A stretch of 62,039 nt of DNA, counting the filler, from Choristocarpus tenellus KU-1152 (Eukaryota > Protista > Phaeophyceae), in the NCBI GenBank assembly GCA_964200185.2. It is 12 parts of 12 records of this genome, joined end to end, with 100 filler letters (N's around TTAATTAATTAA, not from the genome) between each part and the next. Parts side by side here need not be neighbours in the genome. Positions count along the whole stretch, not along the records: positions 49,821 to 54,974 come from CAXNAD020011686.1; 11 more parts are not named here. The stretch is one strand, 5' to 3'. A program made the translations under genes and the position numbers. Under the pieces are notes generated by a model. It worked only from the letters and a program-made list of their open reading frames with translations, was not told where the DNA came from and searched no databases. Below are positions 4,400 through 55,126 of this stretch, piece after piece. Positions within the stretch are counted from its first letter, which is position 1, and each line of letters starts with the position of its first letter.

Positions 4400-5860
4400 A
4401 TCCGAGTACCAAGTTGTTACTGGTGGTATTACCACAAATCCAATAAAGAAGGAGCTCAGGATTTTCCCTCTTTCGGTCAGCCCTCACTCTATCACCCACC
4501 TCAACCAATACAAGTCTTCTTTGAATTCTCTACCTATCCTGACCTCTCTGTTTCCTGTCCTTACCCCTGCACTGTCCCCCTCCTGGTGTAGCCCTGGCAG
4601 ATGCACTGGTCGCCAAAGAAAAACCGTCTGTGGCGTATTGCATACGTCATGTGAACAAGTTTTTCTATCAACGCCCACATGTCCCTCTCTCTTGCTACTG
4701 ACCTCGACTCTGACCACTCCTCTAGCAATCCCTTCAGTCCCTTCAACTTTCCGTCTGACAACGGAATCATCATGGCTTCAGTGTCTATCTTCCATCCCAC
4801 TACTACCTGTGAGGTATGCCACCCTGTCAACATTTTGACTGACAAGATGCCGGTTCCTCTACCTTTCTATGACCTAGCAATCACATGTAGACCGATACTA
4901 AGGAATCTGTTGCTAGCCTCAACCTCCTCCCATCCTCAAACCATTGGACCTCCACTAAAATACTGTCATCAACATACATCTTAACAAAAAAAGGGTCATC
5001 CACCCCGCCTCCCACAACTTCTGGAACCTTCCATGTCTCATCCAACTCACACATATTCCTCCTATCTATTATTGGGGAATGCCTCACACCTGTGGCAATT
5101 CCCTCAGCTTCATTGATTACGACTTTAGACCAGGGATTTGTATTGCAACGGGAAAAATTCTAGAGCCCTTGCCAATAATTCCCACCACCCTGGGCTGTTC
5201 TTCCAACCAAATTGAGTCTGAAATCTATCACAACAACACCTTCAACGCAGGACCAAATCTAGCTTCCCCCTTTGGTTCAACTGGTACTTGGCGAAAGGCA
5301 TCCTTAACATACATCTTACTAACCACGATTCTCGCCTTGGGGAACTTTTTCCTTAGACCTACAATCCTCTTAATCACGTCTCCCAACACAGTACCACAAT
5401 GCACAGGGAGGAGCATCTTTTGAATCTGTTCCTTCAATCACACTCAGGCCTCAACTCTCTTGCTGGCACGGCAAATCATGAACAATCCTAACTTTTGTTG
5501 GTTCTTGGATTATTCTAACTGGGTGCAAGTGCGGTCCTGGAATCTTTGCCACCGCCCTTTTTGGAAACACTAATGCTCTACCCTGGATCACATCCCCTAC
5601 TATCTTCTGTAACAATGCCTTACTATGATCTCTATACTCCAACCTCCCTTCTACCCTACCCTACCCTCTCACGCATACCCGTACCCCAACTTGAACTACG
5701 TGTTGCAATCTCTCTATATCTGTGTGGTACATCAAATGCTCGTTTAAATAGCTCTTTGCCGTACTTCTTGGAGTGGCCCTGTGCCTTTTCAATACGAAGG
5801 TGGATCTTGGTGGTGGTATCAGCATTATTGATGAGTGCGTAGTCTGCTGGTACCATTGTC
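4400..5860 (-). mobile_element. Degenerate DIRS/Ngaro-like retrotransposon RT-RNase H
   Basis: Fragments in order: KVRIVHDL, SKMYVKDAFRQVPV, FFVKMYVDDSILVE, VGWKIDT..M.IPL...KL; many stops and frameshifts. Confidence 0.7.
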
Positions 5861-49720: not shown

Positions 49721-50683
49721 NNNNNNNNNNNNNNNNNNNNNNNNNNNNNNNNNNNNNNNNNNNNTTAATTAATTAANNNNNNNNNNNNNNNNNNNNNNNN
49801 NNNNNNNNNNNNNNNNNNNNGCTGTCCTTTGTCCTTCATTAAAGCACCATAAAAGCCGCGGGTCCAGTGTGGGATAGTCCAACAGACTCCTCTCCACATT
49901 ATGGTAAAGAGTGGTAGTGTTGAAGTTGAACAAATGTTGGCATAATCCTTAAGTGTGAGGTTTGCAAGGTTGGTGTATGTACGTGTTGCGATCTCTTTCG
50001 GTCCATTTGGAGGTAGGAAGGTGAACCCGAATATTGAACCATTGCCATACTTTGGTAAGCATTGATGGTTATGAGGAAGCCACGGGTTCACCAGAGGGAC
50101 ATGTTTTCTTGTCAGTTATGTGCGAAGAGTTAGTTGGAACATAGTCGGGAAAAGTTGAAGTACGGTTTTTTGATATGGTGAATCGAATAAGGAGAAGTAG
50201 AGGGGAGCTAGGTAGGATTTGGATAATAATTAACGACCGGGAAGGAGATAATGTGTCTAACGTAGGCCTTGGCGAAGTGTTTGGAAACTTAGCCGAAAAG
50301 AACGAGAAGAGTTAGTAGTAAAATGTTATACATATTTGGCAGTCTGAACCTTGGATTGGACACACTTTATTGAAAAAGAACATCTTAAGCCTAACTCTCA
50401 AGATGAGTATTATATATGATGTACTGTCACCTCTGACTGGTCTGCATGGATCTGGCACCACTGTGCAAAGGCATAACCCATCAGATCAAAACTGCACGAA
50501 CATGGCAGTCCGAGACAGTCTAAGGTACAGTTAGCCCCGAATAAAACAAAAGTAATGAGACCCGTACTCCAAGAAAAATCTGAAATGATGAACAAGGCTC
50601 TATTTCAATTGATGGACGTAATGGAATTGGCACTCCTCACCCTTCTCTCACCAGTCTACAAGTTTGGGGTAATCCTCAGTTAG

Positions 50684-52826
50684 TCAGTGCCATAGGTTCA
50701 GTACCGTTGAATAACTCTCAATCCACAGTTCTGGCTTCACCAGGCTCAGAAATACGACTTTCTTTGCATGGAGGGCTTCGACATCCTCCAGACGCAACAT
50801 GCTCTTGGATTTACCTCCATCACCACTCAGGTTATTGAGGATTCCCTCATGTACGTAGCAGTGATCCCCTAGGACAATATTTTTGGTCGTTTTTGAGTGA
50901 GTCAACGTATCTTAGAGGGTAGAGCCGCGTCCGTATGGGGGCCAAGAACCAACGTTGCAATTTTGATGTAATTTTGGCTGTGGTGTTTGTTAGGAAGTGT
51001 CCATATCCTTGCTCTAGACACACCTTTTCATAACATACACATTTTACTTCCTATGAACCATTCCAGAGTAGGAAAATTTAATACAACAACCTGTGGGAAG
51101 CCAAGCCCCAAACGGACAAACAGGGCAAAAATCGTACCCTCTAAGATACTTTTATTTTCCGGCCTTGACTTGTCTGAACCCATGGTCATATATGACCTGT
51201 CCCAGGATCTGTGTCTCTGGACATTGTACTGCGAAGATGTTGGTTTTGTGGCTGATTGGAAACGTTTCGCCACGCACGCCTCCATAAAATCTCCCATTAA
51301 TCCCACCATGGTTGGACCGCCGGAGTGGACTGATTGCGGTCTGGCGCAGGGCGCAGGGCCATCACCACATGCGGAACGGTCCCCGTCTTCATCCTGGACC
51401 GCGTCACCTAAACCCATTCTTTTGTCTGTTGAAGCTGTTTCCATCTCTCTGCTCGTACTGGCAGAAGCGAAGATGTAAGTGAAAAGGGTTGGTTGTCCTT
51501 CATGCCCATCCTTTTCACGAGGCTTCTCCACTGGTATGACCCGTCCAACAGCTGTTGGCGACCTCTTATTCTTATTGACTAAAGTTAGAGTCTTGCCAAG
51601 TTTTGCCTTCTTCACCGAAGGCCTGTCTTTCAGAGAAGAACCGAATGATTTCCCCATGACCATAGATCCCATTGACTCAGTATGGATGGAGATCCCACTT
51701 CTCTCCCCAATCTCGTCATCCATCTCCCTTTTATCCGTTGAGTCAAGATACACGGACTTGTCCCCGCTGGTACCCACTGTATCGATGGTTGTACACCTTC
51801 CAGAATCATCCCCCCCCGGCATGGTCTCTGATTCTGCGTCTGGCACCTCCCCCATGTTTTCCTCGTCATCCTTCTTGGAAGATGACAAAACAATAGAACC
51901 AGACCGGTCTCTATTGCCAGTGGAGTCGTGTTCCAAGGTTAGGGTTGCCAAGCTGCCCTCAGAGTGTATCCCGCTCCTCCCACCTTCTGTTGGGTTGGGC
52001 GATGGCATCTCCTGTTCCTCTTCATCACCATCGGGGTTGAGTCCTCCACTATCATCATCAGGCGTCGAGACGTCACCCTCCACCGGTGCCTTGGAGAGTG
52101 GAAACTTGCAGAATGTGGAGAAGTTCTCCATCAGGAGTTGGATACGATCCGGGTCACCGGGGACAGTGCACGTAATAACAATGCCTCCTGGTTGGGTCTG
52201 CAGGTTCGCGACGGCGTTTTCATGGGCCACACGCGTTTTATCCTTGAAGTCCTCCTGTAAGTCGTGTTTGGACTTGACGTTGGTGTCTGGCGTAATCATC
52301 ATGCATGTTGCACGGCTGAGACGTCCGGCCAAAGGAGGAGGCAAAGGAGGCGGCAAAAGAGTTAGAGAGGATGTGTGTAGTATGTGGAGGAGAGGGCGAC
52401 ACGACCAGGACAGAAGAGCTTGGGAATGTGAGGGAATATGTCGATTAGTTCCGTAGCCCACATTATCGCTAGAGTGATACAAATGACGAATTGGCTGTCC
52501 AAATTTCAGGTTGGTCAAATAAGGGGTTGGTGCTGCCGAATAACCTAGTGTCATCCTTACGTTATTTGTGCTCATACAAGTATATAACATAGGTTTCATA
52601 TACGTTTATCTTTAGTTTGGTACAATACAAAGTGGGGCAGCAACTAAAGCTCCAAATATTTGCTTTTCGCCCCTCGCCCCAACTTTGATACTTTTGTTTA
52701 CGTGATATTTGTTTCTTACCTCTTATCCTTCAGCAAGACGGAAAGGCACCTTGCCGATTGCACTGCACCGCACTCTCCAAGGAGAAAACCCCAGGAATCC
52801 ATCACCAACCAACATATTACCACAGC
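50684..52826 (-). CDS. Unknown low-complexity acidic/Ser-Gly-rich protein; putative exons 52826-52720, 52315-51150 and, after the MITE, from 50910 downstream
   Basis: 523-codon stop-free frame with an antisense shadow ORF; phase-2 donor AG|GTAAGA (52720) matches acceptor CTCAG|C (52315); no family recognised. Confidence 0.5.
50899..51157. mobile_element. Complete MITE, family B (259 bp), inside a long ORF
   Basis: GAGTCAACGTATCTTAGAGGGTAG...GTACCCTCTAAGATACTTT; outer TIR bases and TSD degenerate. Confidence 0.9.
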
Positions 52827-53162
52827 CTAAAATAGCTTTCAAGACCTTGATGGAATGATCCCAAGGTGGAAGAAGATAAGAAAACGAGCAAGGCATAGGG
52901 TGGCTCAACTAAGTAGTAACGTGCATAGCGGTATGATGGATGGGTCAGTATTTGGTCATACGTCAGAGATAATCGATGGCTAAGACAAAGGCCCAGTGGA
53001 TAATTAATACTCAGTGTGTGGTTTACCATGTACTTCAACTGCTAGCTTCCGGCGACGAGCCTTACCTGCGCCAAGCTTCTTTACACGCTTACGCGCCTAA
53101 CACAAACTCTAGCTAGGGGAGGCGTAACCGGACTGGTTTGTTTTGAATTGGCACTGCACCAC

Positions 53163-54626
53163 TCATGACCTCAGATGGGACACCAAACATTCGTTTGCCC
53201 AACACTTGCCTGGAGCATTGCTGCTCAGAGAGTCCTCAGTGGCGACCAGTAGTGCATATCGCTCATCGTTGCCGCAGCTGATGGTACTTTCCACAGTAAT
53301 GTGGGAAGGATTTTCCTCAGTCTTGATCTCTTCTTTCCCAGACTGCACCGTAGTCAAGAACACCGAAGTGCATGTTGTAGCATCGTGGGCACGTCCACCA
53401 CATTTGGTGCAAATGCGGTTTGGGCAAGCTGGCTTCTTATGTCCATGTTTACCGCATCTCTCACAAGGAATCTCGGAACGCTTTGGGTTGTAATTAGAAG
53501 TATTTGTTTTTCTTCCACCATTAAATTTACGTTCGGCCCCGTGACCTTGGCCGTTGCGATGAGACTGACTCTTCCCTTGCGATGAGCTGTTAACGACCAA
53601 AGCATAGCTGTTCTTCTGTCTTGAGTCCTTGCCCTGATGAAGGGAAGCATATCGCTCTCTAGCAGGTTTCTCTACATCTGCTCGACATAGTGTTCTCTGC
53701 GAGGCCATCATGCGTATCTTGGTGTCGTAATCTGATCCGAAAGCACTCAGGAACTGTAGGAGCAGCAGCTTGTCCGAGATGACCAGACCCATTGATAGCA
53801 TCCTCCCCCATAGCTCTTCCAGGTGGTTTAAGGTCAAGATCGGATTCGTCCCCTTTTCCACCTTTGAAGTGAAAAACTCACGGAACAAATGTTGGCTATA
53901 ATTACCCACTGTATTAGGCATGAACCAATCATCTATTGCTCGGAAAAGCTTTCTCGGGCTTTGATGTGTATAGCATAGTGCCCTGGTGGTGGGTGCAACG
54001 AGAGCAACAGTAAGTGCATGGTAGGCCTCTTCGACCATCCAGATATCATTCGCACTGAAGCTGTCCGAGAGAAGTTCCTCGTAGGAGCGTTCTTGATTGA
54101 CTGGTCTTTCACTTGTTAACGCATCCAAACAGTGAGTGTATCTGCAATGCACGATGAAACGCCTCCACCAGTCCCAGTAGTCCGAGTCGTCCAATAGTTT
54201 CGGTGGTTGGGTTCTTGATCTCTTTGTCGTAGGGCGAACAATATATGCGCCTGACCCCAAGCTCTCCGAAGAACTGGACCTCCGACTCGCCCCACTTCTG
54301 ATGCTCGCAGCATTCAAACTGTTTCCCCTCTCTGGGAAATTTTCCCTCAATATGGGTTCCATAGGACCCACTTCGACTGGTACGCCCCCAGCCAGAGGCC
54401 ATGTGCTGGGCACAGCGGCCTGGACGACAGGATGATTTCCGTCGCCGACTCTTTCAGACTGAATCATGAGATTGCCAAGGTTTCTTGACAACTCCACTAC
54501 CGTCGCCATAGGCTGTCTGAATTCTTGGACAGATTGTCCCTCAGAAGGAACAGGTTCCCGCAATTCTTGAATCGCATCTCCACGTGTAGACATGATGATA
54601 TGATGGGTTAGAAACCTAAGGTTCAA
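53163..54626 (-). mobile_element. Ty1/copia-type gag ORF (intact, about 476 aa from Met 54593), no pol downstream
   Basis: YWDWWRRF, UBN2-like core (LLLQFLSAFGSDYD), two CCHC knuckles CERCGKHGHKKPAC and CTKCGGRAHDATTC. Confidence 0.85.
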
Positions 54627-54907
54627 TATATCGTCTTAAAGTATCCCCCAAATCATCAAAGAGGATAAGGTGATAAATCCAGCGAGATTGATTTGCTTGG
54701 TGTTTGTAGAGTGATTGATTGAAGTTAGGTGGGGCATGCAATCCCCAATAAAAATCAGAAATATTTCCCTTTAGATGAGAAACATGCTCATACAACTAAT
54801 CACTAGTAAAAGTTTCTGATAGAACTCAACCACTAATTGATTGTTCCTTTACTCCATACATATTTTACCGCAACTGTCCGATAGAGTTTGAAGAGTCTAA
54901 TCGAACA

Positions 54908-55126
54908 GGCGGGGGTCTACACAAGGGCGTCCATTTGGGTCAAAATCAGGAAAAGTGCATTTGCATTATCCATCNNNNNNNNNNNNNNNNNNNNNNNNNN
55001 NNNNNNNNNNNNNNNNNNTTAATTAATTAANNNNNNNNNNNNNNNNNNNNNNNNNNNNNNNNNNNNNNNNNNNNCCCCCCGTCCCTCCCCCCCCCCCCCC
55101 CCCCCCCCCCCCAGATACTTTGACCC
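54908..55126. mobile_element. MITE fragments on both sides of a contig spacer (54908-54974 family C interior; 55075-55126 terminal)
   Basis: GGTCTACACAAGGGCGTCCATTTGGG matches the reverse of 25035-25060; C-run followed by CAGATACTTTGACCC. Confidence 0.7.

Follow-up and report, generated by a model that had tools for sequence, protein, structure and literature searches.

A genuine MITE is present in a small contig of the brown alga Choristocarpus tenellus, where it interrupts a long minus-strand open reading frame (ORF). The element has probably been inserted into an ORF that was already there, and the GT and AG found in its TIRs are probably incidental; in this proposal we infer that the ORF is older than the insertion and that no splicing of the element takes place at the TIR sites. 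A copy of a family of approximately 260 bp, with TIRs starting GAGTCAAAGTATCTTAGAGGGTA and a long hairpin, would have landed in an ORF of approximately 560 codons. This host ORF would be species-specific and, for the most part, disordered-looking; it follows a truncated copia gag on a contig that is small and rich in repeats. Its frame would have been broken by the insertion and now ends 40 codons into the element, and the open frame found downstream would be what remains of the original ORF. As for the GT and the AG, they would be dinucleotides that happen to form part of the sequence recognized by the transposase.

All positions are given along the window, that is, the whole stretch of DNA (62,039 nucleotides), and the features are collected in Table 1. 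Positions 49821-54974 of the window are the exact reverse complement of contig CAXNAD020011686.1 (5,154 bp, assembly GCA_964200185.2, Choristocarpus tenellus), and this piece is a whole contig, small and unplaced, from the genome of a brown alga; it is neither human nor viral. No Rfam match was found in the piece.

Table 1. Features of the contig studied, in window coordinates. The slash marks the hypothetical exon-intron limit.
Feature	Position	Strand	Basis and remarks
MITE-like non-autonomous TIR element, 259 bp	50899..51157		TIRs, hairpin, second copy
Left TIR, GAGTCAACGTATCTTAGAGGGTA	50899..50921	+	1 mismatch vs the 23-nt terminus; boundary set by second copy
Right TIR, minus-strand reading AAATAAAAGTATCTTAGAGGGTA	51135..51157	-	3 mismatches, all in the outer 8 nt
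Hypothetical 5' splice site, AAA/GTATCT	51148..51149	-	sequence only
Hypothetical 3' splice site, CTCTACCCTCTAAG/AT	50911..50912	-	sequence only; sole minus-strand AG between 50960 and 50870
Host ORF, 523 codons from first ATG	51028..52599	-	stop lies inside the element
Annotated CDS in the public assembly, protein P0003, 234 aa (ORF residues 198-431)	51307..52008	-	partial
Downstream open frame, 74 codons + stop	50684..50908	-	entered after removal of 239 nt, or of any length 2 mod 3
Ty1/copia-type gag ORF, two CCHC knuckles	53163..54626	-	Pfam, translation, homology

Structure of the element and its family

The arms of the element (50904-50921 and 51135-51152) measure 18 nt each and show 94% complementarity, and their pairing extends, with bulges, to approximately 60 nt. 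The element strand, either as RNA or as DNA, folds into a single long hairpin (-79 kcal/mol, z = -3.2). When the arms were compared with the 23-nt terminus GAGTCAAAGTATCTTAGAGGGTA, one mismatch was observed in the left arm and three in the right one, and none of 100 shuffles matched. The inner 15 nt of the TIR, GTATCTTAGAGGGTA, are perfect in both arms, and the four mismatches of this copy are all located in the outer 8 nt, which is the part that would be exonic if the element were removed by splicing. In the right terminus these outer 8 nt are degenerate (AAATAAAA vs GAGTCAAA), and since all the mismatches of the right TIR are concentrated there, the true right boundary of the element is uncertain. 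No TSD was observed at the boundaries as drawn, the right one being uncertain, when duplications of 2-10 nt were looked for; the flanks are GAGT and TCCG. This lack of a visible TSD at the window copy prevents the assignment of the element to a superfamily.

A second copy was found in the same assembly, on contig CAXNAD020011390.1 (L001), where positions 5049-5144 correspond to 50899-50993 of the window with 85% identity over 96 nt. This copy sits outside any called gene. The similarity begins exactly at base 50899, and therefore the left boundary of the element is fixed. In addition, a related terminus, GGGTCAAAGTATCTGGGG, is present at position 5146 of L001, 97 nt past the left end of the first copy. 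This terminus (5146-5239), GGGTCAAAGTATCTGGGGGGGGATATCGGCGTCCGTTT, reads GGGTCAAAGTATCTGGGGGGGG...GGCGTCCGTTT, and judging from its sequence looks like a sister subfamily that would be nested in, or abut, the first copy. The hexamer GTATCT is kept in the four termini that were seen (4/4).

On L001 there is also a 108-codon ORF (4746-5072, plus strand), which comes after a (GA)n run and continues into the MITE copy as far as the TAG of the TIR, where it stops. Here again an open frame adjoins a copy of the family; this one is unannotated, presents no Pfam match, and its contig ends short of the other side.

DNA-pattern scans of viral sequences and metagenomes for further copies of the MITE returned nothing related. 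Four metagenome contigs (L003-L006) that share the 19-mer GTCAAAGTATCTTAGAGGG were discarded as chance matches: the 19-mer is located at the same place in one unrelated conserved gene, of approximately 38% GC, and these contigs show no similarity to the MITE beyond it.

The element is a genuine MITE, which presents most of what defines such elements with the exception of the TSD. Like MITEs, which are non-autonomous class II elements, it is short, its TIRs give a long imperfect hairpin, and it is non-coding: the ORFs inside it are all shorter than 60 aa, the longest frame gave no protein word match, and none of them matched any family. Also like MITEs, it is lower in GC than its flanks (42% vs 48%) and is found again on a different contig of the genome. 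Unlike them, the window copy has no visible TSD, and the family rests on two copies and one related terminus. The sequence-only reading had claimed for these coordinates an inverted-repeat, non-coding element of a repeated family, with the shared-terminus consensus CAAAGTATCT, with TIR mismatches confined to the would-be exonic parts and with no preserved TSD. The complementarity, the hairpin and the shuffles bear out the first of these points, the second copy and the related terminus the second; the related terminus also agrees with the consensus, and the location of the mismatches and the state of the flanks are as it had described. This MITE family of Choristocarpus tenellus is undescribed but ordinary. 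It is useful when annotating the TEs of this Phaeoexplorer genome, whose assembly is poor, and has little value beyond that.

The host ORF and its surroundings

The host frame is open for 485 codons upstream of the element and its stop (51030-51028) lies inside it, 40 codons from the entering end, which confirms what had been claimed. Stops on the minus strand amount to 186 in 5,152 codons, approximately one per 28, and at such a density an open run of 485 codons is beyond chance. Furthermore, the base composition of the ORF (GC1 > GC2 < GC3) follows a pattern that fits coding sequence. S, G, D, T and E are frequent in the ORF from 52302 onward, and on the basis of this composition that part looks disordered.

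A HMMER scan of 1.84 billion protein representatives with the upstream ORF gave a single match, P0003, with 100% identity; apart from this annotated fragment of the ORF itself, no relative was found among those representatives. The word search gave no relative either, nor was any Pfam family recognized. P0003 forms a singleton cluster, and the recognition of the host ORF by the ESM atlas was low. The deposited CDS has no stop codon, ends 150 nt before the element and includes no intron at it, and the model looks less like a full gene than like a fragment limited by the evidence behind it.

It should be noted that the P0003 model begins at an internal ATG, although the frame is open far past both of its ends. 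The end of the CDS at 51307 was considered as a donor in combination with the acceptor of the MITE, and it was rejected because the resulting intron, of 396 nt, would be out of frame. Another ORF, of 325 codons (51479-52456, plus strand), runs antisense to the host ORF. The coding periodicity of the minus strand may have produced it as a side effect, but either strand, or neither, may be the translated one.

The gag ORF is located upstream on the strand of the host ORF, at a distance of 560 nt. This gag ORF matches Retrotran_gag_2 (PF14223) with a score below the Pfam cut-off (E = 0.002), and both of its CCHC knuckles are intact in the translation. In addition, it is 54% identical to the Choristocarpus tenellus protein P0001, encoded on L001, whose ORF runs on into Pol_BBD. 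The similarity to the copia of L001 ends abruptly at approximately 53179, which indicates that the copia is truncated here and that its pol part (protease, integrase and RT) is missing. This gag-only state could be the result of a deletion or of a nested insertion, or it could correspond to a non-autonomous gag-only element. The possibility that the host ORF were the pol of the neighboring copia was rejected, given that no match to PR, INT or RT was obtained with it and that the similarity to L001 stops where indicated. At the low-coordinate end of the contig there is another minus-strand open frame (49822-50091), of at least 90 codons, which runs off the contig end and has no Pfam match. The contig is a repeat- and TE-rich scrap of 5 kb that carries a truncated copia gag, and such surroundings lower the prior for the host ORF as a gene that is kept functional by splicing.

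Frame continuity across the element

Downstream of the element the three frames are open for 2, 20 and 74 codons, respectively. On the minus strand, the host frame enters the element as GAA AAT AAA A/GT ATC TTA G, and after the AG at 50912-50911 the sequence continues as AT ACG TTG ACT CAC. The GT at 51149-51148 and this AG bound 239 nt on the minus strand, and the join proposed in the sequence-only reading, that is, the removal of these 239 nt between GT and AG of the TIRs with the connection of the two open frames, enters the frame of 74 codons; both its coordinates and this frame agree with our results. Given the density of stops on the minus strand, the chance of an open run of 74 codons is roughly 0.02-0.07.

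The removal of any length that is 2 mod 3 would join the same frames, including that of the element with a 4-nt TSD (263 nt), which would restore the state previous to the insertion. In addition, half of the GTs within 50 nt of the entering end (4/8) restore the frame in combination with the single available AG. Since the frame is restored by a precise loss with a 4-nt TSD and by other GTs as well, its continuity shows only that there was a pre-existing ORF. The continuity is fair evidence that the element landed in an ORF of approximately 560 codons, and it is no evidence of splicing.

The 74-aa downstream frame showed neither a Pfam match nor a PDB sequence match. Its language-model feature matches to PH-like families (0.77-0.84) are below the level that is meaningful for the tool and amount to a weak lead.

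A different explanation is that no functional gene is involved, and that the host ORF is a decaying ORF that was borne or captured by a TE, or a chance or antisense ORF beside the copia gag, in which case the continuity of the frame would be a coincidence. We regard this as rather unlikely. The ORF does lack homologues and families and has a low protein-likeness, it shares its strand with the truncated gag and comes close behind it, and it is accompanied by the antisense frame; the annotated model is a fragment with no stop, and the single-sequence AF2 model of the downstream part is unconfident (pLDDT 44). However, the length of the upstream run and the base composition described above argue against this explanation, and a multi-copy TE gene would be expected to show annotated copies in the scan of 1.84 billion representatives, where none appeared. 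The insertion of the MITE into a pre-existing ORF, with disruption of its frame, continues to be the reading that we favor.

Splice signals in and around the TIRs

Another possibility is that the element is located within an intron and is removed with it, by means of other donors such as those at 51179 (TGG/GTTCAG) or 51137 (AGG/GTACGA), and of the acceptor at 50912 or one further downstream. It would then be an ordinary intronic MITE, a frequent situation in brown algae. Three other GTs in the proximity restore the frame with the single acceptor. Among them, the one at 51137 has the G at -1 and the G at +5 and, from its sequence, looks a better donor than AAA/GTATCT. In Ectocarpus, short non-autonomous DNA transposons are common in genes, within existing introns, and 81% of the genes contain a genic TE (PMC12477816). 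In contrast, the upstream frame is open up to the element and into it, which is more typical of an exon than of an intron, and the deposited annotation has no intron of any kind in this place. On balance, we find an intron of this sort unlikely.

The sequence-only reading had suggested an introner-like, self-masking MITE. According to it, whichever way the element is oriented, the spliceosome would use the GT at position 9 of the TIR together with the AG at position -13, and the host ORF would stay functional with 24 extra nt (8 codons). The arithmetic of this proposal is right: the joined frame is the only one that is open for a considerable length downstream, and the residual 24 nt would be frame-neutral and, in this phase, free of stops, as had been stated.

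Regarding the donor, AAA/GTATCT has no G at -1, no A at +4 and no G at +5, which speaks against its use. By the general rules of U1 pairing we take it to be a poor donor, in which presumably only three contiguous pairs with U1 can be formed. The conservation of GTATCT in all the termini seen is favorable to the proposal, as is the fact that the mismatches accumulate in the outer, would-be exonic 8 nt while the inner 15 nt are perfect. It should be considered, however, that it is common to find a GT and a CT in the outer 20 nt of a TIR, and that the symmetry of the TIRs provides "two-way" sites automatically. Furthermore, donor and acceptor face each other in a perfect 15-bp stem of the predicted hairpin, and being locked in such a structure counts against the proposal; in the modeled fold, this stem could bring the ends together or could block U1.

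The acceptor side is the part that looks more intron-like, and its context is plausible as far as the sequence goes. The only AG in a span of 90 nt comes just after the pyrimidine-rich CTCTACCCTCT and is preceded by an AG-free run of 67 nt, which is in the top 2% of the piece (7 of the 320 AG-to-AG gaps reach at least 60 nt). A CCTAAC is located at 50994-50989, 79 nt from the AG. These two elements correspond to the branch-like motif and to the AG-free stretch of about 65 nt that had been pointed out previously. The related terminus of L001, when it is read as a leaving end (CCCCCCCCAG/ATAC), also looks like a good acceptor.

Apart from the donor and the stem, other observations oppose an introner-like behavior. 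The deposited CDS ends upstream and the annotation contains no intron at the element. A protein carrying the 3' part of the ORF is absent from a collection of 15 billion proteins, which includes assemblies of public sequencing runs. No TSD is visible, and the proposal concerns a single case, in an orphan ORF on a TE-rich scrap. Taking both sides into account, splicing of this copy at the TIR sites seems to us very unlikely, and the simple disruption of a pre-existing ORF by the MITE is the interpretation that we retain. The broader idea that, in this early-diverging brown alga, the family as a whole would act as introners, with both splice sites in the TIR, in either orientation and with the addition of eight codons, seems to us very unlikely as well.

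Comparison with known systems

It is well documented that introners can arise from TIR/TSD DNA transposons. The introners of Aureococcus carry both splice sites and add 12 nt, that is, four codons (Gozashti et al. 2022, PMC9860276, Fig. 2F), and together with the elements of Polarella (10.1101/2020.10.14.339549) they constitute the precedents that favor an introner-like reading. The arrangement proposed here would resemble that of Aureococcus in having both splice sites inside the element and in leaving a residue which, with the TSD, makes up whole codons (24 nt vs their 12 nt). It differs in that the Aureococcus introners are supported by RNA, number hundreds to thousands and have insertion-free orthologues, whereas here there is one copy with a weak donor in an orphan ORF.

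Introner-like elements that generate introns in either orientation were described in Polarella glacialis and A. anophagefferens (Roy et al., 10.1101/2020.10.14.339549). Unlike the present proposal, in which both splice sites are inside the TIR, those elements usually take one of the splice sites from the TSD.

In brown algae, more than 90% of the introns are reported to be common to sister groups, and the splice sites to be canonical GT-AG (Phaeoexplorer, 10.1101/2024.02.19.579948). That most introns are reported as ancient and stable weighs against introners in the group, as does the fact that they are unreported there: a search of the full-text literature found no paper describing introners in brown algae. 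The intronic elements of Ectocarpus (PMC12477816) are similar to the window element in being short non-autonomous DNA elements of the brown-alga lineage, but they are located in pre-existing introns, and the window copy lies in what reads as an exon.

Should the element really be spliced, the range of introners would come to include multicellular brown algae, Phaeophyceae would have a first example of intron gain driven by a transposon, and a case with both splice sites inside a symmetric TIR would be added to those already described. In view of the precedents in Aureococcus and Polarella, it would represent, even then, a new lineage and a new variant and not a new principle.
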